In this document: one piece after another, positions 9,015 through 61,351 of the stretch
Position numbering within the stretch: position 1 is the first letter of the stretch
How the letters are laid out: each line of letters starts with the position of its first letter
The notes under the pieces: generated by a model
What the model was told of the DNA's origin: nothing
The model's input: the letters and a program-made list of their open reading frames with translations, nothing else
Database searches by the model: none
Made by a program: the position numbers and the translations under genes
DNA from: Isurus oxyrinchus
Taxonomy: Eukaryota
Reading direction: 5' to 3'
Length of the DNA stretch: 64,000 nucleotides
Assembly (NCBI GenBank): GCA_026770705.1
Contig: JANJGN010000007.1
Coordinates: forward strand, 112,778,001-112,842,000

Positions 9015-9240
9015 TGCGAGTAGCCTTTCCAAGGCTGCCAGGCCTTCCTTTATACAGGTCGCCGGGTCGCTATTGGACCTGGTGGTGCGTCCGCCACCGC
9101 CCATCCACTCTCGCTATGCATGGGAGTCGTGAGGTACACTGGGCCCGCCCATGAAAAATGGCAGTGTGGACTCGAGTCCCCCCGCCAGCCAGAAAATTCA
9201 GCCCTAGGAAACGGTCGATAGCATTTTACAACACCTTTTA

Positions 9241-9568
9241 AAAAAATATTCATTCATGGGATATGGGCATCACTGGCTAGGCCAGCATTTCTGGCCTATT
9301 GTTCAGAGGGAATTTTTAAGGGTCAACCACATTGCTGTGGGTCTGGAATCACATGTAAGCCAGACCAGGTAAGGTTGGCAGATTTCCTTTCCTGAAGGAC
9401 GTTAGTGAAACAGAAGGGTTTTTACGACAATCAACAATGGTTTCATTGACATCATCAGACTTTTAATTCCAGATTTTTTATTGAATTCAAATTTCACCAT
9501 CTGCCATGGCAGGATTCCAGGTCTCTGGAATACTAGTCTAGTGACAATACCACTATGCCACTGCATCC
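9241..9568 (-). mobile_element. tRNA-derived SINE with LINE-derived 3' tail
   Basis: Head TGGCATAGTGGTA; body shared with 19510 and 28035; tail ...cccatgaatgaa plus T/A run. Confidence 0.8.
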
Positions 9569-19509: not shown

Positions 19510-19915
19510 ATAATAGCAGTGGTCATGTTACTGGACAAGCAATTCAGAGGCCTAATGATGTGGAGACATGAGTTCAAATCCTACCATGGCAGCTGAGGAA
19601 TTTAAATTCAATTAGTTGAAAGATAATCTCGAATAAAAGCTAGTATCAGCAATAGTGACCATGAAACTACCAGATTGTCATAAAGTTCCAATGGTTCACT
19701 AATACTCTTCAGGGAATGAAATCAGCTGTCCTTATCTGGATTGGTTTATGTGTGTGTCTCCAGGCCCCCAGCAAAGTGGTCGTCTCTTAATTGCCCTCTA
19801 AAATGGCCTTAACAAACCACTCAGTTGTATTCAAGTCAGCTCACCACCACCCGCTTGAGGTCAATTGGGGATGAGCCTTATCAGTAACAGACTCATCCAG
19901 TGAATAAATTTTATA
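19510..19915 (+). mobile_element. tRNA-derived SINE (head, body and LINE tail)
   Basis: A-box-like sequence near 19513-19523; B box AGTTCAAATCC at 19571-19581; body ends ccactcagttgta at 19829, followed by a tail matching the LINE 3' end at 21775-21880. Confidence 0.82.
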
Positions 19916-21772: not shown

Positions 21773-22650
21773 CTTTTTTATTCATTCATGGGATGTGGGC
21801 ATCATTGGCTAGGCCAGCATTTTCTGCCAATCCCTAATTGCCCTTGATAAGGTGATGATGAGCTGCCTTCTTGAACCACTGCAGGGGAGTTCTAGGATTT
21901 TGACAGTGATGGAATGGTGATATATTTCCAAGTCAGAATGCTGAGTGGCTTGGAGGGGAACGTCCAAGTGATAGTGTTCCCATGTGCCTGCTGCCTTTGT
22001 CTTTCTGGATTGTTGCGTTCATGGATTTGGAAGGTGCTCTCTAAGCAGCCCTGGTGTGTTCCTGCAGTGCATCTTGTAGATGGTACACACAACTGCCACT
22101 GTGCGTCGGTGATGGAGGGAGTGAATGTTTATGCCAATCAAGCGGGCTCTTTGCCCTGGATGGTGTCAAGCTTCTTGAGTGTTGTTGGAGCTGCAGTCAC
22201 ACAGACAAGTAGAGAGTATTCCATCACACTCCTGACTTGTGCCTTGTAGATGATGGACAGGCTTTGGGGAGTTAGGAGGTGAGTTGTAGCTACAGTATTT
22301 ATATGGCTAGTTCAGTTCAGTTTCTGGACAATGGTAACCCCCAGGATGTTGATAATGGGGAATTCAGTGATGGTAATGCCATTGAATGTTAAGGGGTGAT
22401 GGTTAGTTTCTCTATTGTTGGAGATGGCCATTGCCTGGCACTTGTGCGATGTGAATGTTACCTGACAGTTGTCAGCTTGAGTCTAGATATTGTCCAGTTC
22501 TTGCTGCATTTGGACATGGACTACTTTGGTATCTGAGGAGTCACGAATGGTGCTGAACATTGTGCAATCATCAGCAAACATCTTCACTTCTGACCTTATG
22601 ATGGAAGGAAGGTCATTGATGAAGCAGCTGAAGATGGTTAGGCCTAGGAC
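21773..22650 (-). mobile_element. 3' part of the APE-RT LINE (same family as 28035-30900)
   Basis: LGLTIFSCFINDL...MFADDCT; 3' tail ...cacatcccatgaatgaataaaaaa. Confidence 0.88.
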
Positions 22651-22679
22651 ATATGCACATATAAAGGTGTCAGGAAATA

Positions 22680-25859: not shown

Positions 25860-28030
25860 GAGAACCATAGAAAAGTTATGATGCAGAAAGAGGCCATTCA
25901 GCCCATTGTGTCTGCGCTGAACAAAAAGAGAAAAAGAAACGAGCTGCTCATTTTAATCCCACTTTCCAACACCTGGTCCATAGTCTCGCAGGTTACAGCA
26001 CTTCAGGTGAAGATCCAGGTACCTTTTAAATGAGTTGAGCATTTCAGCCTCAACCACTAACTTAGGCAGTGAATTCCAGATTCCCACCATCCTCTGGGTG
26101 AGAAAGTTTTTCCTCATGTTCCCTCTAACCCTTCTACCAATCATCTTAAATCTATGCCCCCCCCCCCACCCCCCACTAATTGACCCCTCAACTAGGGGAA
26201 ACAAGTCTTTCCTGTCTCTCCTATCTAGGCCCCTCATAATTTTGTACAGCTCAATTAGATCACCTGTTAGTCTCCTCTTTTCTAAGGAAAACAACCCTAG
26301 CCTATCCAATCTGCCCTGGTAGCTGCATTTTTCAAGCCCTGGCAACATTCTTGTAAATCTCCTCTGCACTCTCCCCAGAGCAATTATGTTCTTCCTGTAC
26401 TGTGGTAACTAGAACTGTACTCAAAATTCCAGCTATGGCCTAACCAGCATTTTATATAGTTCCATCATTACATCCCTGCTTTTGTATTCAATACCTTGCT
26501 CAATAAAGGAAAGCATTCCAAATGCTTTCTTGATCATCTTGTCCATCTGTCCTGCTACCTTCAAGGACCTGTGGACATGCACTCCAAGGTCTCATTTCAA
26601 TAACTTCCTATTTATTGAATATTCCCTTGCTTTGTTTACACCCCCCCTCCCACTCCCCCCAAATGCATTACCTCACATTTCTCTGGATTGAATTCCATTT
26701 GCCATTTCTCCACCCACTCAGCCAAACCATTGATATCATTCTGGAGTCAACAGCTGTCCTCTTCACTTGCACAGTCAATTTTTGTGTCATCTGCAAATTT
26801 CCCAATTATGCCTCCCACATTTAGATCTAAATCATTAATATATACAACAAATTGCAAGGGCCCTAACACTGAACCCTGTGGAACACCACTGAAAATTTTC
26901 CAATCTCAAAATCCATTGACCATTACCCTTTGTTTCCTGTCACTGAGCCAATTTTGGATCCAACCTCACCCTGCCACCTTACCCTGTATCCCATGAGATC
27001 TCACTTTCCTGACCAGTCTGCCATGCAGGACCTTGTCAAATGCCTTACTGAAATCCATGCAGACAACATCCACTGCACCACCCTCATCAATCCTCCTTGT
27101 TACTTCCTCAAAAAATTCTATCAAGTTAGTAAGTCATGATCTTCTCCTAACAAAACCATGCTGACTATCCCTGATCAATCTGTGCCTTTCTAAATGACAG
27201 TTTATTCTGTCTCTCAGATTCCAATCATTTGCCCACCACTGAAGTCAGACTGATCGGCCTATAATTTTCTGGCCTATCCCTCGCACCCCTTTTAAATAAT
27301 GGTACAATGTTCGCAGACTCCAATCCTCTGGGACCTCACCTATATTTAGTGAGGATTGGAAAATGATCCCCAGAGCATTCGCTAATTGCCCCTAGCTTCC
27401 TTTAACAGCCTGGGATACAATTCATCTGGCCCTGATGATTTATCCACCTGCAAGGATGCCAGTCCCTCCAGTACTTCTTCTCTCACTATGTTTATTGTAT
27501 CTAATATTTCATACTGCTCCTCATGAGCTAGAATGTCTGCATCATTCCTCTCCTTAGTGAAGACAGAGAAAAAGTACTCATTGAAATCCCTGCCTATATC
27601 TTCAGCATCAACCCACAGGTTACCAGGTTACAGGTACATCTTTGATAGGTCCTACCTTTTCTTTAGTTATTCTCTTGCTCTTAATGTACTGGTAAAATGT
27701 CTTAGGATTTTCTTTGATTTAACTGGCCAATTTTTTTCATATCCTCTCTTTGCTTTCCTAATTTCCATTTTTACTTCACCCCTGTCCTTTCTAAATTCCT
27801 CTAGGCTGTCTATAGTATTACATGTTTTGAGAGTGTCATAAACTTTCTTTTTCTGTTTTATCTTGGCCTGTTTGCGTCTAGATAACCAGGGGGCTCTAGA
27901 TTTGGCCGTACCAGCCCTTTTCTTTGTGGGGACATATCTACACAGTGCCGTAGAATCTCACCTTTGAATGCCTCCCACTGATTTGACATGGTGTTTCCTT
28001 CTAATAGTCGTATCCAGTCCACTCTCGCCA
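25860..28030 (-). mobile_element. CR1 LINE ORF2 3' half, decayed
   Basis: QRRFTRMLPGL...LFSLEKRRLTGDLIELYKIMRG; GVPQGSVLGP; KFADDTK; CR1-type 3' UTR near 25860-25920. Confidence 0.88.
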
Positions 28031-28034
28031 GGAT

Positions 28035-30900
28035 GACGATGACGTAGTGGTATTTTCAATGCACTAGTAAACCAGGGTAAGGCTCTGGGGACCCAGGTTT
28101 GAATTCTGCCATGGCACATGGTGGAATTTGAATTTAGTAAAAATCTGGAATTAAAAGTCTGATGATGACCATGAAACTATTGTTGATTGTTGTCCTTTAG
28201 GGAAGGAAATCTGTCGTCTTTACCTGGTTTGGTCTACATGACACCAGACCCACAGCAATGTGTTTGAGTCTTAAATGGCCGAGTAAGCCACTCAGTTGTA
28301 ACAAACCGCTACAAAAAGGAATAAACCTGGCATCAACCAAGGCACCGGAAACGACAACGGCAGTCTCAACCCTGTTGACCCTGAAAAGTCCTCGTTACTA
28401 ACATCTGGGGGCTAGTGCCACAATTGGGAAAGCTGTCTCACAGACTTGTCAAGCAATAGCCTGACATAGTCATCCTCACAGAATCATACCTCACAGATAA
28501 TGTCTCAGACACCATCACCATCCCTGGGTGTGTCCTGTCCTACTGGTGGCAGCACAGTGGTATACAGTTGGGAGGGAGTTGCCCGGAGAGTCCTCAACAT
28601 TGACTCTGGACCCCATGAAGTCTCATAGTATCAGGTCAAACATGGGCAAGGAAACCTCTTGCTGATTACCATGTACCACCCTCCCTCAGCTGATGAATCT
28701 TGTTAATTCACCACTTGGGGGAAGCACTGAGGGTGGCAAGGGTGCAGAATGTACTCTGGGTCTTCAATGGACTTCAATGTCCATCACCAAGAGTGGCTTG
28801 GTAGCACCATTACTGACTGAGCTGGCCAAACCCTAAATACATAGCAGTTATGACTGGGTCTGCGGCAGGTGGTGAGGGAACCAACAAGAGGGAAAAACAT
28901 ACTTGACTTCATCCTCACCAACCTGCCTGCAGCAGATGCATCTGTCCAAGACAATATTGGTAGGAGTGACCACCGCACAGTCATTGTGGAGGCGTAGTCC
29001 TGCCTTTGCATTGAGGATATCCTCCATCATGTTGTGTGGCACTACCATTGTGCTAGATGGTAGTGCCACAAAAATAGGATAAATTTTGAATAGATCTAGC
29101 AACTGAAGACTGGGCATCCATCAGCAACAACAGAATTGTACTAGAACACAATCTGTAATCTCATGGCCCGGCATATCCCCCACTCTACCATTACCATCAA
29201 GCCAGGGAATCAACCCTGGTTCAATCACGTGTGCAGGAGGGCATGCCTGGAACAGCACCTGGCATACCTAAAAATGAGGTGTCAACCTGGTGAAGCTATA
29301 ACACAGGACTACTTGTGTGCCAAGCAGCAAGTGATAGACAGGGTTAAGCAATCCCACAATCAATGGATCAGATCTAAGGTTAAACAATCCCACAATCAAC
29401 AGATCAGATCTAAGCTCTGCAGTCCTGCCACATCCAGTTGTGAATGATGGTGGACAATTAAACAACTCACTGGAGGAGGAGGTTCCACAAATATCCCCAT
29501 CCTCAATGATGGAGCCCAGCATATCAGTGCAAAAGATAAGGCTGAAGCATTTGCGACAATCTTCAGCCAGAAGTGCTGAGTGGATGATTCATCTCAGCCT
29601 CTTCCAGAGGTCCCCAGCATCACAGATGCCAGTCTTCAGCCAATTTGATTCAATCCACGTGATAACAAGAAACAGCTGAAAGCACTGGATAGTGCAAAGG
29701 TTATGGGGCCTGACAATATTCCAGCAGTGGTACTGAAGACTTGTGCTCCAGAACTTGCCGTGCCCCTAGTCAAGCTGTTCCAGTACAGCTACAACACTGG
29801 CATCTACCTGGCTATGTGAAAATTGCCCAGGTTTGTCCTGTACACAAAAGCAGGACAAATCCATCCCAGCCAATTACCACCCCATCAACCTACTCTCCAT
29901 CATTAGTAAAGTAATGGAAGGGTCATCAACAGTGCTATCAAATGGCTCTTGCTTAGCAATAACCTGCTCATTGAGCACAGTTTGGGTTCCGCCTGGGTCC
30001 CTCAGCTCCTGACCTCATTACAGCCTTGGTTTAAATATGGACAAAGGAGCTGAACTCCCAAGGTGAGGAGAGAATGACTGCCATTGACATCAAGGCCGCA
30101 TTTGACTGAGTGTGGCATTAAGGAGCCCTAGCAAAACTGGAGTCAATGGGAATCATGGGGAAAACTCTGCTGGTTGAAGTCATACCGAGCACAAAGGAAA
30201 ATGGTTGTGGTTGTCGGAGGTCAGTCACCCCAGCTCCAGGACATCACCACAGGAGTTCCTCAGGGTAGTGTCCTGGGCCCAACCATCTTCAACTGTATCA
30301 TCAATGATCTTCCTTCTATCATAGGGTCAGAAGTGAAGATGTTCACTGATGATTGCACAATGCTCAGCACCATTCACGACTCCTCAGATACTGAAGCAGT
30401 CCATGTCCAGATGCAGCAAGACTTGAACAATATCCAGGTTTGGGCTAACAAGTGGCATGTAACATTCACACCACACAAGTGTCAGGCAAAGACCATCTCC
30501 AACAAGAGAGAATCCAACCATCGTCCCTTGATGTTGAATGGCATTACCATCACTGAATCCCCCACTGTCAACATCCTGGGGGTTGACCATTGACCAGAAA
30601 CTGAACTGGGTTAGCCATATAAATACTTTGGCTCCAAGAGCAGGTCAGAGGCGAGGAATCATGCGACAAGTAACCCACCTCCTGACTCTCCAAAGCCTGT
30701 CCACCATCTACAAGGCACAAGTCAGGAATGTAATGGAATACTCCCCATTTGCCCAGATGAGTGCGGCTCCTACAACACTGAAGAAGCTGGACACCATCCA
30801 GGACAAAGCAGTCCGCTTGATTGGCACCACATCCACAAACATTCACTCTCTGCACCACTGACACAGGGTAGCAGCAGTGTGTACCATCTACAAGATGCAC
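28035..30900 (+). mobile_element. APE-RT non-LTR retrotransposon (CR1/L2-Jockey group) with tRNA-like 5' head and no ORF1; decayed and 3'-truncated
   Basis: A box TGACGTAGTGG at 28040-28050; B box GGTTTGAATTC at 28096-28106; APE motifs NIWGL and PDIVILTES from about 28400; RT motifs GPDNIP, DIKAAFD, GVPQGSVLGP, FTDD. Confidence 0.88.
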
Positions 30901-31499
30901 AATGGGAATTAAGGTGTTTTTATTTTGGGGTCACTAACATTGCAAACAGTTGCTGCCCTGAACAGGATTGTCCCAATGCCTCAGACTGACAGCTCTGCTG
31001 CAGTGAAGCACCGAAAGGGGCCTATGCTCATTCCGTTCCTTGTTGTTATTTGCTCGGTCATTATTTAGTTGAGAACTACACACAGGCTTATGGATGGGAG
31101 GCTAATGATGACATCATCTCCGTGCATGGTGTGACTGCGATGATGTCGTTCCCCGTGCCGCTGCACTGCTGGTCTGGTGTCTAATATTCTTGACCTCCAT
31201 CAGTGTGGCCACCTTAGATGTTAGACTAACTGATCTATAATTTCCTGAATTCTCTCACTCGCTTTTCTTAAATATTGAAGTTACATTTGCAATTTTCCAA
31301 TCTAAAGGGACAATTCCTGAATCAAGACAACTTTAGAAAATTCTAAAGCATCTGCAATTTCCTCACCTTTCTTTAAAATAATCAGGTCATGAGGTTTGTC
31401 AGCCTTCAGTGCATTATGTTTTCTAATATTGCTTTCATACTTAACGATAACTTTTAGTGAGTTGATTCCCTAGTATTGTCACATATATTCTCTTGCTCT

Positions 31500-40999: not shown

Positions 41000-41190
41000 T
41001 CAATTAAGTTGCCTCCTGGCATAATTCCCATGTCCACCTTATCAAGACCATTCAGGATCTTATATACTCCAATCAAGTCACCCCTCATGCTCCTGAACTC
41101 CACTGGAAAAAAGCCTAGCTTGTCAAACCTATCCTCGTAAGACAATCCGCTCATTCCAGGTACCAATCTAGTAAACCTCCTCTGTCCCTG
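41000..41190 (-). mobile_element. CR1 fragment
   Basis: QRRFTRLVPGMSGLSYEDRFDKLGFF-type coding. Confidence 0.65.
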
Positions 41191-42879: not shown

Positions 42880-43250
42880 TGAATCACGGAATCTCACAGA
42901 ATCACAGTGCAGAAGAGGCCCTTCGGCTCATCGAGTCTGCACCGACATGTGAGAAATGCCTGACCTACCTACCTAATCCCATTTACCAGCACTTGGCCCG
43001 TAGCCTTGAATGTTATGACCTGCCAAGTGTTCATCCAGGTACTTTTTAAAGGATGTGAGGCAACCCGCCTCCACCACCCTCCCAGGCAGTGCATTCCAGA
43101 CCGTCACCACCCTCTGGGTAAAAAAGTTTTTCCTCACATCCCCCCTAAACCTCCTGCCCCTCACCTTGAACTTATGCCCCCTTGTGACTGACCCTTCAAC
43201 TAAGGGGAAGAGCTGCTCCCTATCCACGCCTCTCATAATCTTGTACACCT
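42880..43250 (-). mobile_element. Relatively young CR1 3' end
   Basis: VYKIMRG...TRGHKFKVRGRRFRGDVRKNFFTQRVVTVWNALP...AGKWD; 3' tandem (attctgtg)-like tail. Confidence 0.88.
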
Positions 43251-43389
43251 GCAATGATATTGACACTGTATTTGCAATATCAACGTAGTATCATAGAGAA
43301 TTAGTACATTACTGAAAGGTACCCCAATAGGGAGTGTAGAGTGCACATCTACTCACCAGGTTGAATCATGTATTATCCCCAGCCTCATC

Positions 43390-51282: not shown

Positions 51283-53062
51283 TAATCGCTGCAAATGTGG
51301 ATGGTCTTATCTGGTTTCAGTACAAGGACAATAGGTGCTGCCCATTCCGAAAATTGAACCGGATGTATGATGCCTAGTTGCTCCAGTCTGTTTAACTCAG
51401 CATCCGCTTTTTCTCTTAAAGCATATGGTACCGGTCTTGCTTTGATAAATCAGAGAATTGCCTCTGGATCAACATAAATCTTGGCTTGCAAGCCTTTGAT
51501 TTTTCCTTATTTGTTGTGAAAGATGCTGTCTTCTTTTTTTATCAATTCTAGCAGTCCTCCTGCCCGCACTTGAAAAATCTTGGACCAATTTAACTTGGTT
51601 TCTTTTAGCTAATCACGGCCCAGAAGGCTTGGTCCTTCCCTAGTCACTATTATTACTGGGGGCTGGGCTGACTGCTGCCCATAGTTCATAGGTACCATGG
51701 CAGTGCCTTTTACTTTTATGGCTTCTCCCATGTAAGTCTTCAACAGAGCAGAAGTTCTCTCCAGGCTTAAGGGTTGGGTACCTTCACTCAGATACTGAAA
51801 TGTGCGCTCACCCATCACTGTGACTGATGCCTCTGTATCCACCTCCATAACTAGAGGCTTCCCGTTTTACGTGAAGTGTGACAGTAATAGGGTTTGCCTT
51901 GACTGCTTTGTTATTTCAGGCTCTTTCACATTATGCACTTCTAACATCTTTGCTGGCTGGTTACTTGGCAGTCTAGGCTTAACTCTACGCTATTTTATCA
52001 AATGTCCTCTTTTGCGACAGTAGTGGCACTCGGCCTCCTTAAATCTACGTTTCAGGATTGTGGTTACCCCCACATCGGTAACAATTCAACTTCAGGATTG
52101 TTGTCTGATTGCCTCTGGTATACTTTTTTGATTTCTGGGTGATTGGGAATGATTTCAGCTTCACAGTTGTTTCCGCAGTTTTGGCACCACGCCTGGCTGC
52201 AGATTCCCACCCTAACAGGGAAACGGTGCCATTTTGCAAGCTCTGTGGCTTCTCCATATCTTTTTCAGCACTTTCCATGGCCAGTGCTACCTCCATTTCT
52301 TGTTTAAAATATATATGGACTTCTGCCAGCAATTGACGCTGAATGGTGTCATTGCGCACACCACAAACTAATTGATCCTGTAGCATACTTTCAAGCTTGC
52401 TCCGCAATCACAATGCTTTGACAATTGCTTCAACTTAGCGACATAAGTCGTGAGCAAGTCTCCTGAGGCCCTCACCCTCGTATTAAATTTGAATCTTTGA
52501 ATAATGACTGATGGTTTAGGTTGAAAATGTGCCTTCACTAAATCCACGAGCTCGCTGTACGATTTGGAGTCCAGCGTGCTTGGGGCTGTGAGACTGTGAA
52601 TAAGGTTGTAGGTTTCACTCCCACAGATGCTTAAGAGAATTGTTTTGCCTCCTCCCCTATTTCGTTGGCCTGGAAATAAAACCTGAGGTGCTCGATGTAT
52701 TAAGTCCAGTCCACCCCTTAAGGGGAGAAATATGTGTCGATCCTCCCAAAGAGAGGCATCCTGGTGAGTATATATATTTTTCCTTCTTTAAAACGAGATA
52801 CCCACAGCTGTTGGGTGAGAGACAGTGCCAGGATCATTTATCCTCATCATCAGATATCGAGATACACTACCGAGAGGCTGACAAACTTAATTTACAGTGC
52901 TGCTGGATTAGCTGCAGGCCTCTAGCAAGGCTATAATACACTGTAGACTAGGAAAGCTCTGCAATTTAAAAGCTTCCCTGTGCTCGGTGTTGATTGGCTG
53001 TTCTGACCATGTGACTCTTACTCAGTAAGGCTGGCCTTAAAGCAGCAATCACCACAGTAACA
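51283..53062 (-). mobile_element. Gypsy 5' half (LTR, gag, protease, start of RT)
   Basis: LQDQLVCGV; CYRCGGNH and CHYCRKRGH knuckles; MEVDTEASVT...SLLGRD; ARPVPYA...SEWAAPIV; putative LTR at about 52855-53062. Confidence 0.82.
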
Positions 53063-54257
53063 CATTGGCATGGATAAATGATTGGCTAGACAACAGGAAA
53101 TCAAGACTTGGCATAAATGGGTCTTTTTCTGGTTGGCAGGATGTAATCAATGGTGTGCCATAGGGATCAGTGTTGGGGTCTCAACTTTTTACAATTTATA
53201 TGAATGACTTGGATTAAGGGACCAAAGGTATGTTTGCTAAATGTGCTGATGACACAAAGATAGGTAGGAAATTAAGTTGTGATGAGGCCGTAAGGAGTCT
53301 ACAAAGGGACATAGATAGGTTAACTAAGTGGGCAAAGTTCTGGCAAATGGAGTATAATGTGGGAAAATGTGAAATTGTTCATTTTTGGTAAGAAGAATGA
53401 AAAATGCTTATTATCTAAATGGGGAATGCAGAGCTCTGAATTTCAGAGGGATCTGGGTGTCCTAGTGCATGAATAACAAAAGACTAGTATGCAGGTACAG
53501 CAGGTAATTAGGACAGGTAATAGAATGTTATTGTTTATTGTGAGGGGAATTGAATATAAAAGTAGGGAGGTTATGCTTCAGTTGTACAGGGCACTGGTGA
53601 GATCACATCTGGAGTATTGTGTACAGTATTGATCTCCTTTATTTCAGGAAAGATTTAAATGCATTGGAAGCAGTTCAGAGAAGCTTTACTAGGCTAATAC
53701 CAGGAATGGCGGGTTGTCTTACAAGGAAAGGTTGGATGGGCTAGACTTGTGTCCACTGGAGTTCAGAAGAGTAAGAAGCGACTTGATTGAAACCTTTAAG
53801 TTCCCAAGGGGTCTTGACAGGGTGGATGTGGAGAGTATGTTTCTCCTTGTGGGAGAATCTAGAACAAGGGGTCTCTGTTTAAAAATAAGGGGTCATCCAC
53901 TTAAGACAGAGATGAGGAGAATTTTTTCTCTCAGAGGATCATGAGTCTTTGGAATACTCTTCCTCAAAAGGCAGTGGAAGCAGGGTCTTTGGGTGGAATT
54001 GTCCCAGATTTGCACTATGTGCAGTGGTGGACGGGAAAAACAATGTTTTACCCACCGGCCACAATGGCGGCTTCTCACACGATATTGTCTCTATCCCTCC
54101 GCATTAATTATGCATTCCCAGAAAACATGCTGTTTTGGTGGTGGCGGGCTCTCATTCGCCATCACCTCACCACTTCCTCACACCTGGTGCCATATTTAAA
54201 TTGGATCTACACACACACATCTCAGTGCTTCCAACCCAGGACTGCTGCACAGAAGAC

Positions 54258-58414: not shown

Positions 58415-58840
58415 TGTCATAGAGTCATAGAGGTCTACAGCACAGAAAAAGGCCCTTTGGCCCATCGAGTCTGCACCAGTCAAACAAGTACCAAACTATT
58501 CTAATCCCATTTTCCAGCACTAGGCCCATAGCCTTGTATGCCATGGCTTCGCAAGTGCACATCCAAATACTTCTGAAATGTTCTGCCTCTATCACCCTTT
58601 CAGGCAGTGAGTTCCAGATTCCTACCACCCTCTGGGTGAAAAAAATTCCTCCTCACATCCCCTCTAAACCTCCTGCTCCTTACCTTAAATCAATACCCCC
58701 TGGTTATTGATCCTTCCACCAAGGGGAAGAGTTCATTCCTGTCTACTCTATCTATGCCTCTCATAATATTATACACCTCAGTCATGTCCCCCCTCAATCT
58801 CCTCTGCTCCAAGGAAAATAATCCCAGTGTATCCAATCTC
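58415..58840 (-). mobile_element. CR1 3' end inserted within the Harbinger
   Basis: LGLFSLEQRRLRGDMTEVYNIMRG...; (ctatgact)n tail. Confidence 0.85.
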
Positions 58841-61351
58841 GGTGTGGGGGAATGATTCCGGCAGGTTGGCCTTATAATGATATGCAGATATGCTACAATG
58901 AGGTTCACGATGTCCAATGGTGGGAAACATGCCTGCCATTGACAGGCGGAGTGGACAATCTCAAATTGGTTTCACGACATCGTGAAACCAATTTTTGGCC
59001 TTCTCGCCATATTGTCCGCTCATGCTGCCAAACACGCCTGAATCCAGCGGGCACAGAAATTTCTGTCCTTTGAATATTTTTAAGGCAGAGCTAGGTAGAT
59101 TCTTGATAAGCTAGGGGGTGAAAGGTTATTGGGGCCAGGTGGTAATGTGGAGTTGAGATTACAGCCATGATCTTATTGAAGGGCGGAGCAGGCTTGAGGA
59201 GCCAAGTGGCCTACTCCTGCTCCTAATTCGCATGTTCATATGAGGGGGTCTCCACTTCCTCATCAGCACTTCATTTTTAATGTAGTAACTTTCAGAGATT
59301 GCCTCTGCCTCAGCTTCAGTTTGGGAAGCCTGATCTAACTTTTGTAACAACGGGTCAGCTTGCTGAGCTGCAACCATGGAAAACCTACTTGGGGTCCTCT
59401 GGACTCCCAAAAATGATGTCAGATAACTAGACAGTAGTGTCATCTGTTTGCAGTGCCACTTCAGCCACCTCAGATGGAGTTTTTCTGGCCATAGACCAGG
59501 CTAACACACCACCAGGGAAAATGCCAGACATTTCCTCCTCCAGCTGTTCTGTCTCCCTGCCCTCGGTCAGCTTCTTTGAGTCTACTGGGGATGCTATCAC
59601 TTTTGATGTTGCCAGGTCATTGCCAAGGAGCAGGTCAACTCTGACCACAGGCAAACTGGGGATGATTCCCACGGTCACCAGTCCTGACACATGGTTGAAT
59701 TCCAGGTGCCTCTGGTATAAGAGGATTGGCATGTACCCTCCTTCAATACCCTTTACCAACACCTTGGGCAGTTACTGCACTCTCTGGTGGAAAGGTCGTG
59801 CCTTTTCTCAGCAATAGAGTTTGGTTGGCTCCTGTGTCTCTCAGTATCACTATAGTCTTACTTGCCTCGCTCTGGGGAAATATAGCCACTTTTCCTTCTG
59901 ATGCAAAATCTTTGTAACTCACAGATTTTTTTAAACTCACTTGCATTCAGTAGTACGTTTACAGGGATTTGCTGCTGCAGTCAAAGCCATAGCTTGTCCT
60001 GCTATGCGCTGTGTCTGACTCCCATTTTCTGTGCGGGGTTTGTGTTTTCCAACAAATCCACGAGTTTTTCCCCGTAACATCCAGCAATCAGCACAGATGT
60101 GTTCTGACTTGTGTCAGTTAAAACACTCCTCAGCAGCATCCTTTCTGGCCTGAGGAGGGTCCCTTGTGTTTCCAGCTGTCCCTTCTCTCCCATGAGTACT
60201 CAGTTTCCTATCACTCTCCCACCTTCTATCCTTCTCATTTGGTTGGGGGTGACTAGGGAAGGATTTCCTTTGGGATGAGGGTTTGCGGACAAGCTCATAA
60301 TTATCAGCCAGGGCTGCTGCCTGTGTGACCCATGTTACTCTCTGTTCCTCTATGTAATTCTTATCAGGAAAGGTATGGAAGTTTTCAACTCCTCAAGGAG
60401 AATTATTTCACAAAGGTTGCTCAATTTTAAGTGCATGTACCCACTGTCAAAAGCAAGCTGCATAAGCCATTCAAATTCCAGGTACGTTTGTCAGGTCGTT
60501 TCCTAAGGGTAAGGAATTTATGACTATACACTTCTGGCACTAACTGTTATGCATTTAGAATCACCCTTTTTGCTGCCTCATGGATTGTTGCACTTTCCTC
60601 AGGCAAGAGGGAGTAAACCTCATGAGTTTTTCCTGTCACCTTACTCTGCAACAGCAGAGACCAGTGTTGGGCTGGCCACTTTGACTGCTGTGCCAACCAT
60701 TCAAAAGAAGTGAAGAAGGCACCCATCGCTTCTTCATCAAACTTGGGTTTAAATGGGCAAACTGGAACACCTCAGCCCCGAAGATGGTTCCCTCACCAGG
60801 GGTGTCTTCAATGGGCACAGTGGGACCATTCGTTCACAGCTTGAGCTGTTTTAATTTAAACTCCCTTTCCTTTTCTCTTTCCTAGAATTCTCTTTCCTCC
60901 TTCAGTTCCTGCATTTCTCTCTTTTTCCCATTCCTGCCTCTGTCTCTCTTTATCCTGTTCCTCAAACTCCAGTTCCAATTTCTGCTACTCCACTCTTAAT
61001 TTCTCTGCCGCTAATTTATCTATTTCAGTGTCCTCAATTTCAACCTCCAGATTTTTTGCCACCCATTTTAAAATTTCAATTTCTCTGGCTTTCGGGCAGA
61101 ACTCCACCTCTAAATGCCGAGCTACACCTTTTAATAGTTCCAAGGACAGTGCTCATAACTTCTCACCAGATACCTCATCCTTGTCTATGAAAGTGTTGAT
61201 ATCGATTGTGGACATTTTAGCACTTTAGTATTGCAAACCCAAGGAAACCTTTTGTAGTTTGTTTAATTGCTTTTGAAGGGACAATTTACTTTCCCCACTC
61301 CAATTCTCTTGTCAGTCTGTAGGAACAATTCCGGGCATTAGGCCCCAAATT

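Follow-up and report, generated by a model that had tools for sequence, protein, structure and literature searches.

A LINE copy with a tRNA-type head

The window analysed here is a 64-kb stretch of Isurus oxyrinchus DNA without any N, and the element under study is a copy of a long interspersed element (LINE) that spans positions 28035-30897 on its forward strand. This copy begins with a tRNA-type head (28035-28106, +), followed by a body of ~190 nucleotides (nt; 28107-28296, +) and, ~90 nt further on, by a reading frame for an apurinic/apyrimidinic endonuclease (APE) and a reverse transcriptase (RT), with no break between these parts. Head and body recur in short interspersed elements (SINEs) elsewhere in the window. 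A preliminary description of the locus had proposed an APE-RT LINE that starts with a tRNA-like head and a body of ~200 nt. The contiguity of the parts and the breakpoints between SINE and LINE sequence support this architecture for the present copy, in which head and body together (~290 nt) would be the whole 5' untranslated region (UTR) of a LINE with a single open reading frame (ORF).

The copy itself is dead and decayed. Its APE-RT reading path contains 23 in-frame stops and five frame changes and has no intact coding capacity; of the earlier designation as an autonomous LINE, the assignment to the APE-RT LINEs stands, whereas the coding capacity does not hold for this copy. The copy is also cut at its 3' side. 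A second copy of the family at 21790-22651 (-), which is 5'-truncated and shares 79% identity with 30269-30900, has kept its natural 3' UTR and tail, ending ...CATGAATGAATAAAAAA. The family match of the studied copy breaks off at ~30897, within the C-terminal ORF region (30595-30897, +), while copy 2 runs on for ~285 nt of 3' UTR and tail, so that the family's last ~285 nt are gone here. The data from sequencing runs were Logan contigs of two DNA runs and of two runs guessed to be RNA, in which RNA starts and strand are not visible. Loose ends of these contigs at 30900 go on as copy 2 does, and the flank depth is ~100 beyond 30948. Position 30900, which had been taken as the end of the element, is therefore not its natural 3' end, and a whole element would measure about 3.15 kb, as judged from the alignment with copy 2. 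Since the 3' end is lost at ~30897, the target site duplications (TSDs) of the studied copy are unreadable.

Coding part and relatives

A decayed APE domain with a frame change near 28544 occupies 28385-29000 (+) and was recognised with tblastn against three proteins (P0060, P0053 and P0130), for which the homology begins at 28334 or 28385 and ends at ~29000. P0060 carries Exo_endo_phos at residues 60-249, and the window piece 28857-28994 matches Exo_endo_phos_2 weakly (E = 0.028, below the Pfam cut-off). The RT domain, likewise decayed, lies at 29863-30590 (+) according to Pfam RVT_1 and tblastn; RVT_1 itself matches at 30174-30590 with E = 2e-13 and 51 bits, against a cut-off of 29.6. With the APE N-terminal to the RT, both domain features of an APE-type LINE are present. 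The RT is presumably CR1/L2-like and not RTE-like. Between head and APE there is no ORF1 and no open frame of at least 30 amino acids (aa), apart from a 66-aa out-of-frame stretch. The early prediction of APE-RT coding from near 28400 without an ORF1 was thus borne out.

The nearest full-length relative found was P0060, a protein of 983 aa encoded as a single ORF on contigs of 3.6-3.8 kb, with 35% identity. Its alignment with the 14 stop-free pieces of the window was of poor quality. The best protein relatives, with 60-81% identity, were fragments from whale shark (Rhincodon), horn shark (Heterodontus), sawshark (Pristiophorus) and ENA/JGI contigs.

Head and body are shared with local SINEs

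The head was delimited by a motif scan and by alignment to SINE heads. An A-box-like TGACGTAGTGG lies at 28040-28050, with one mismatch to the consensus TRGCNNAGTGG, and a B-box-like GGTTTGAATTC at 28096-28106, with two mismatches to GGTTCGANNCC. Both boxes are hence present at the positions at which they had been described. At such tolerance, chance would yield 0.7 A/B pairs in a shuffled window, and the real window has four, which weakens the box evidence.

Behind the B box, a body of ~200 nt had been noted, and blastn and nhmmer confirmed it at 28107-28296 as sequence common to the SINEs at 9315-9560 (-) and 19516-19828 (+). With nhmmer, 28040-28275 aligns to 9560-9315 (-) with E = 2e-35, and 28044-28299 aligns to 19516-19828 (+) with E = 2e-19. 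The studied copy has private deletions in the body near 28191 and 28240, where loose contig ends are found. SINE copy A (9250-9561, -) consists of head and body followed by the last ~55 nt of the LINE tail. SINE copy B (19510-19900, +; SINE_B below) has the head and the body as far as the counterpart of 28296 and continues, starting at TTCAAG, with the final ~100 nt of the LINE 3' region. Both are short and non-coding and have a LINE-derived 3' tail directly after the body, in contrast to the studied copy.

Some further observations concern these parts. T runs stand directly 3' of both SINE tails, a T8 at 9240-9262 (-) and a T4 at 19895-19905 (+), and LINE copy 2 has an A run only; with two cases, the T runs could be a terminator at or just past the SINE end, a target-site preference, or chance. 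An 11-mer at the end of the body, AAGCCACTCAG (28283-28293, +), recurs in the 3' UTR of copy 2 (21940-21965, -), ~100 nt upstream of the point at which the SINE_B tail starts. The end of the body may itself be derived from the LINE 3' region. Two Rfam matches to head and body were dropped as chance-level: FTX_4, a conserved region of a lncRNA (28049-28191, -, over the full 141-nt model; E = 0.41, 20.7 bits, far below the gathering score), which probably reflects chance or an old SINE-like core common to both, and a near-match to CLRN1-AS1 with E = 2.3.

The joint between head and LINE

The joint is informative when compared with SINE_B. This SINE keeps to the LINE 5' part precisely as far as ...CCACTCAGTTGTA (28296), where it passes over to TTCAAG... 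of the LINE 3' region; the microhomology CAGTkG is present on both sides of the breakpoint. Descent of SINE_B from a head-bearing LINE by internal deletion would by construction place its breakpoint at the end of the shared part. By estimate, a LINE inserted into a SINE, or a switch onto SINE RNA, would hit the body/tail junction of SINE_B in ~6 of 330 positions. We read the co-resident SINEs as internal-deletion derivatives of a head-bearing LINE.

Alignment revealed neither a SINE tail nor an A-rich end between the SINE-like part and the ORF of the studied copy, and this excludes an origin by SINE retrotransposition upstream of a LINE. The stretch that follows the shared part, 28297-28384 (+), is specific to the LINE and missing from the SINEs. 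It would comprise the end of the 5' UTR and a basic N-terminal region before the APE, as P0130 aligns in tblastn from 28334, and it has no ATG left in the APE frame. P0060 has only ~27 mostly basic residues before its APE, and the studied copy has a similar basic stretch at 28334-28384. These two features place the ORF start at ~28300-28335, directly after the end of the SINE-shared part at 28296. The LINE copy is accordingly complete at its 5' side. The head is probably the 5' end of the family as well.

Searches elsewhere returned no counterpart of the joint. Two DNA patterns, for the junction and for the ORF start, had no match in metagenome contigs, and locus-relative scans of genome contigs and viral contigs found no relative. 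A protein search with the 66-aa open stretch over the junction (28201-28398) gave one candidate and no matches.

Abundance of the family in sequencing contigs

The LINE family is very abundant, even enormous: 250,517 and 320,274 contigs of the two DNA runs aligned. At position 28369, which is LINE-specific, 118 and 119 contigs of the two DNA runs aligned at 80% or more, and the summed depth was 65k-103k, compared with ~25-125 on the single-copy 3' flank. Depths are summed k-mer depths of contigs, which swing 100-fold between neighbouring sites, and they were used for the call of a multi-copy sequence and for the depth step between 28369 and 28421 discussed below, not for copy number. From contig count and depth at 28369, the LINE-specific 5' stretch is multi-copy, a result on the stretch itself and not on the sequence upstream of it. 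In the small runs X15 and X17, both guessed to be RNA, the bin of the SINE body was 7- to 22-fold deeper than the LINE 5' bins; for the DNA runs the ratio was ~2.4. Contig depth measures such a ratio poorly, and no conclusion was drawn from it.

T runs on the sense strand

The scarcity of sense-strand T runs had been put forward as a sign of RNA polymerase III (Pol III) transcription, and the underlying counts were correct. After the B box, the sense strand has one TTTT (29084-29087) and 13 runs of at least four A, and copy 2 (21790-22651, -) has no T4 at all. Runs of at least four T (T4+) amount to 0.40 per kb in the studied copy and 0 in copy 2, compared with 4.5 and 4.1 on the sense strand of two further LINEs of the window and 6 over the whole window. 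In mononucleotide shuffles of 28107-30900, 5.9 T4 were expected for the one observed (P = 0.014). The deficit grows with run length: at an overall T frequency of 0.23, the probability of a further T is 0.18 after T, 0.15 after TT and 0.06 after TTT. The corresponding values for A runs in the same copy are flat (0.28, 0.26 and 0.30), and T runs are not avoided in the other LINEs of the window.

Synonymous-codon permutation of the 2040 in-frame nt gave a similar result for shorter runs. Runs of at least three T (T3+) numbered six, compared with 11.9 expected (P = 0.005), and A runs were as expected. The co-resident control LINE at 25959-27948 (-), which has a normal T-run content (4.5 T4+ per kb), showed no deficit in the same permutation (T3+ 28 vs 27.5; T4+ 7 vs 8.1). 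For T4+ in the studied copy the permutation gave 0 vs 1.95 (P = 0.11); the scarcity relative to synonymous codons is therefore significant for T3+, but not for T4+ itself. The 3' UTR of copy 2 (286 nt) has no T3+, where 1.6-1.7 were expected (P = 0.17). Together, the coding part shows a real but modest avoidance of sense-strand T runs beyond amino-acid and codon usage, which the neighbouring LINE lacks. This avoidance fits selection against Pol III terminators and is no proof of it.

Neighbouring elements and private features

The 5' flank of the studied copy is a different LINE, namely the control LINE at 25959-27948 (-), whose truncated 5' end adjoins the studied head in a head-to-head arrangement. 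It is C-poor, comprises the RT and the C-terminal part, and shares ~40% identity with two proteins (P0103 and P0114). On the 3' side, 31174-31362 (-) is a short RT fragment of yet another LINE copy and covers the same RT segment as 27230-27385 (-). That the flanks are two halves of one host LINE was considered and rejected, as 31195-31344 (-) repeats the RT segment of 27230-27385 (-) and is no continuation of it. Further RT fragments of other LINE families were located by tblastn at 53041-54021 (+), 41032-41184 (-), 43000-43254 (-) and 58566-58869 (-).

Two features are private to the studied copy. In the linker region at 29342-29414 (+), Tandem Repeats Finder identified a 36-nt tandem duplication in two copies, and contigs that skip the duplication have joints near 29323-29402. 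Self-matches revealed a palindrome of 42-44 nt at 29032-29075, just upstream of the sole TTTT behind the B box.

A possible Pol III template and its alternatives

We propose a route by which such an element would have been mobilised. With the head inherited at the extreme 5' end, the template RNA would have to begin at the head, that is, at its first bases. Pol III initiation driven by the internal A/B-box (type 2) promoter of the head would be the simplest way to obtain this start. Pol III would then read through ~3.1 kb of sequence poor in T runs, and the uncapped RNA would be translated inefficiently or in a cap-independent manner. Uncapped messengers were reportedly found to be poorly translated by Gunnery and Mathews in 1995. 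Finally, the LINE protein, on recognising the 3' tail, would use target-primed reverse transcription to copy the LINE as well as the SINEs derived from it by deletion. The first step has a precedent in SINEs: the passages of PMC5786205 that deal with promoters attribute their use in SINEs to the start at the head's first bases which a type 2 Pol III promoter gives.

The confidence that we place in the parts of this proposal differs. A SINE-headed LINE family is probably real, and its transcription by Pol III is plausible but unproven. Given a head at the level of the family, we consider it an even question whether Pol III made the mobile template; overall, a template made by Pol III is a possibility that falls somewhat short of even, yet we take it to be the likeliest single route. 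The complete reading, that of a dead copy of an abundant shark LINE with a single ORF, a head as 5' UTR, SINEs formed by internal deletion and a Pol III template, is likewise put forward tentatively, as rather less than an even prospect. Doubtful is the fullest version, a coding LINE family of sharks transcribed over ~3.1 kb by Pol III, with T runs purged, an uncapped RNA serving as both messenger and template, and SINEs arising as its internal deletions.

A number of results weigh against a Pol III-transcribed, head-bearing family. The studied copy is the only head-bearing copy examined (n = 1). ARAGORN found no tRNA in the window and none in the heads down to -ps80 (0/3), and its calls on the heads at -ps60 were mutually inconsistent; Rfam gave no tRNA for three heads at the gathering score or for two heads at E <= 10. 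The tRNA cloverleaf that marks a tRNA-derived SINE (SINE2) was hence found in none of the three heads by Rfam or ARAGORN. We keep the label 'tRNA-like' because of the boxes and the homology to SINEs with better-kept boxes; to this extent the earlier label is justified, but it has no call by ARAGORN or Rfam behind it. No intact family ORF was present among the best 150 of 33,543 hits in a search of 1.84 billion representatives, and to judge from these sequences the family looks extinct. We also know of no Pol III product of ~3 kb that serves as mRNA. From the literature, passages of PMC10886601 and PMC5786205 state that LINEs and other elements without long terminal repeats (non-LTR elements) use RNA polymerase II (Pol II), and that the processivity of Pol III sets a limit to the length of elements.

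The T runs and the 5' ends of other copies add to these points. The head contains a further TTTT at 28053, a run that has no T4 counterpart in the SINE copies, so that the studied copy carries T4 at both 28053 and 29084. Dinucleotide-preserving shuffles of 28107-30900 gave 3.19 +/- 1.60 T4 for the one observed (P = 0.13), and Markov models of the same stretch expected 3.18 at order 1 (P = 0.17) and 2.26 at order 2 (P = 0.33), with P = 0.17-0.31 for order 1 over repeated tests. The T-run argument of the preliminary description consequently survives comparison with mononucleotide chance, but not with dinucleotide chance. The 5' UTR is not depleted in T3 (8 vs 4.4-5.3 expected). As several run-length tests were made on one decayed copy, the P value of 0.005 for T3+ is weaker than its face value. 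In the contigs, the summed depth drops 5- to 10-fold from 28421-28447 to 28369 in all four runs, and one 326-nt contig aligned only down to 28325 and continued with 105 nt that did not align. In many copies that extend to the ORF start, the 5' UTR may therefore be different or more diverged; the step reflects either faster divergence of the UTR than of the ORF start or a family with several 5' ends.

Transcription by Pol II is a close rival. Head and body would again be the 5' UTR of the family, but Pol II would make the LINE RNA, with a cap, from an internal promoter within head or body, only the SINEs would be made by Pol III, and the T deficit would be a quirk of codon context or composition. 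The described reliance of non-LTR elements on Pol II and the length limit of Pol III agree with this, as do a T4 deficit that is not significant against dinucleotide shuffles or codon permutation and a 5' UTR without T-run depletion. A start exactly at the first base of the tRNA-derived head would, however, require a new internal promoter, and a mere quirk sits uneasily with a T3+ deficit (P = 0.005) that the control LINE does not show; we regard Pol II transcription as possible, though on the unlikely side. A different use of the head would be RNA processing, in which RNase P cuts a tRNA-like fold at its 5' side in read-through Pol II transcripts and so sets the 5' end of the element. HDV-like ribozymes define the 5' end of R2 and RTE elements in an analogous manner, and this explanation accommodates the extreme 5' position of the head while needing neither a promoter nor a long Pol III transcript. 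Its chance of being correct seems very slight, given that none of three heads scores as a tRNA (Rfam E <= 10; ARAGORN normal thresholds) and that the T-run deficit would be left unexplained.

Other explanations take the joint as an accident and not as inherited from a master element. The RT may have switched near the 5' end of the LINE RNA onto SINE RNA, or a LINE behind a SINE fragment may have been read through (5' transduction), in a single event or repeatedly by way of the shared body. LINEs are known to form chimeras with small RNAs by template switching (L1/U6; 10.1101/2025.02.02.635956), and the depth step from 28421 to 28369 fits several kinds of family 5' end. But a switch onto SINE RNA should begin at the 3' end of that RNA and bring the tail along, which is absent, and the switch point would have to coincide with the SINE_B body/tail junction, at the estimated ~6 of 330 positions. 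A chimera is thus improbable in our view. Simple adjacency, with a LINE that landed in or beside an unrelated older SINE, is more improbable still. The extreme abundance of both families, with contigs in the hundreds of thousands, speaks for it, contigs also join the SINE body to internal points of the LINE (28177>28545, 28181>30201), and the TSDs that would bear on it are unreadable here, with the 3' end lost. It would nevertheless demand a LINE truncation within ~50 nt before the ORF start, while most copies are strongly 5'-truncated, together with a SINE broken exactly at the SINE_B body/tail junction; moreover, no SINE remainder lies behind the element.

Comparison with known systems

In the textbook and specialist view (passages of PMC5786205 and PMC10886601), LINEs belong to Pol II and SINEs to Pol III, and SINE bodies are explained by a head that was added to an already deleted LINE. 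If true, a coding LINE that bears the head itself would turn this succession around in a repeat system that ranks among the most abundant in elasmobranchs, and a SINE superfamily would have originated in one step. If Pol III transcribed the LINE, its RNA would be the first natural messenger and template of ~3 kb made by this polymerase, and would raise questions on cap-independent translation and on an escape from silencing linked to Pol II. If Pol II transcribed it, the element would still be an unusual case of a LINE with a tRNA-derived 5' UTR. A search within one literature library turned up no account of a LINE with a tRNA head or of one transcribed by Pol III; supplementary figure S1 and the tables of PMC5786205 may list further cases of LINE 5' parts in SINE bodies.

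The original work on HE1 and HER1 by Ogiwara in 1999 reportedly described a shared 3' tail. Passages of PMC3747384, and of PMC2911107 for HE1, present HE1 as a tRNA-derived V-SINE and HER1 as a LINE of sharks and rays that have a common 3' tail. The present SINEs are similar in that their last 55-100 nt are in common with LINE copy 2. As described, however, HE1 and HER1 share the 3' tail only, whereas in the studied LINE the SINE head and body stand at the 5' end, a comparison made by description and not by sequence.

A related architecture is given by Kojima 2018 (PMC5786205), which in the passages concerned describes SINEs composed of a small-RNA head, a LINE 5' part and a LINE 3' part, with bodies derived from LINE 5' UTRs, as well as bipartite non-autonomous LINEs and the internally deleted derivatives RIME/Ingi, NARTc/L1Tc and Bov-A/Bov-B. 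The SINEs in our window have the same three-part make-up. In the model outlined there, the autonomous LINE is headless, the head is added after the deletion, and only the RTE and Vingi clades contribute; the difference here is that the coding LINE copy itself bears the head.

L1/U6 template-switch chimeras likewise place the sequence of a small Pol III RNA on the 5' side of a LINE. Those chimeras are one-off dead ends with variable joints, whereas the SINE part here is without a 3' end of its own and the joint falls on a SINE subfamily's breakpoint. Retrotransposons that took a promoter of a small Pol III RNA are described in passages of PMC10886601 on the TRIMp3 elements Cassandra, Helenus and Ajax. 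These are non-coding LTR elements of 0.3-1.3 kb, and their autonomous partners must use Pol II according to the same source. The element studied here differs from them as a coding non-LTR element of ~3.1 kb.

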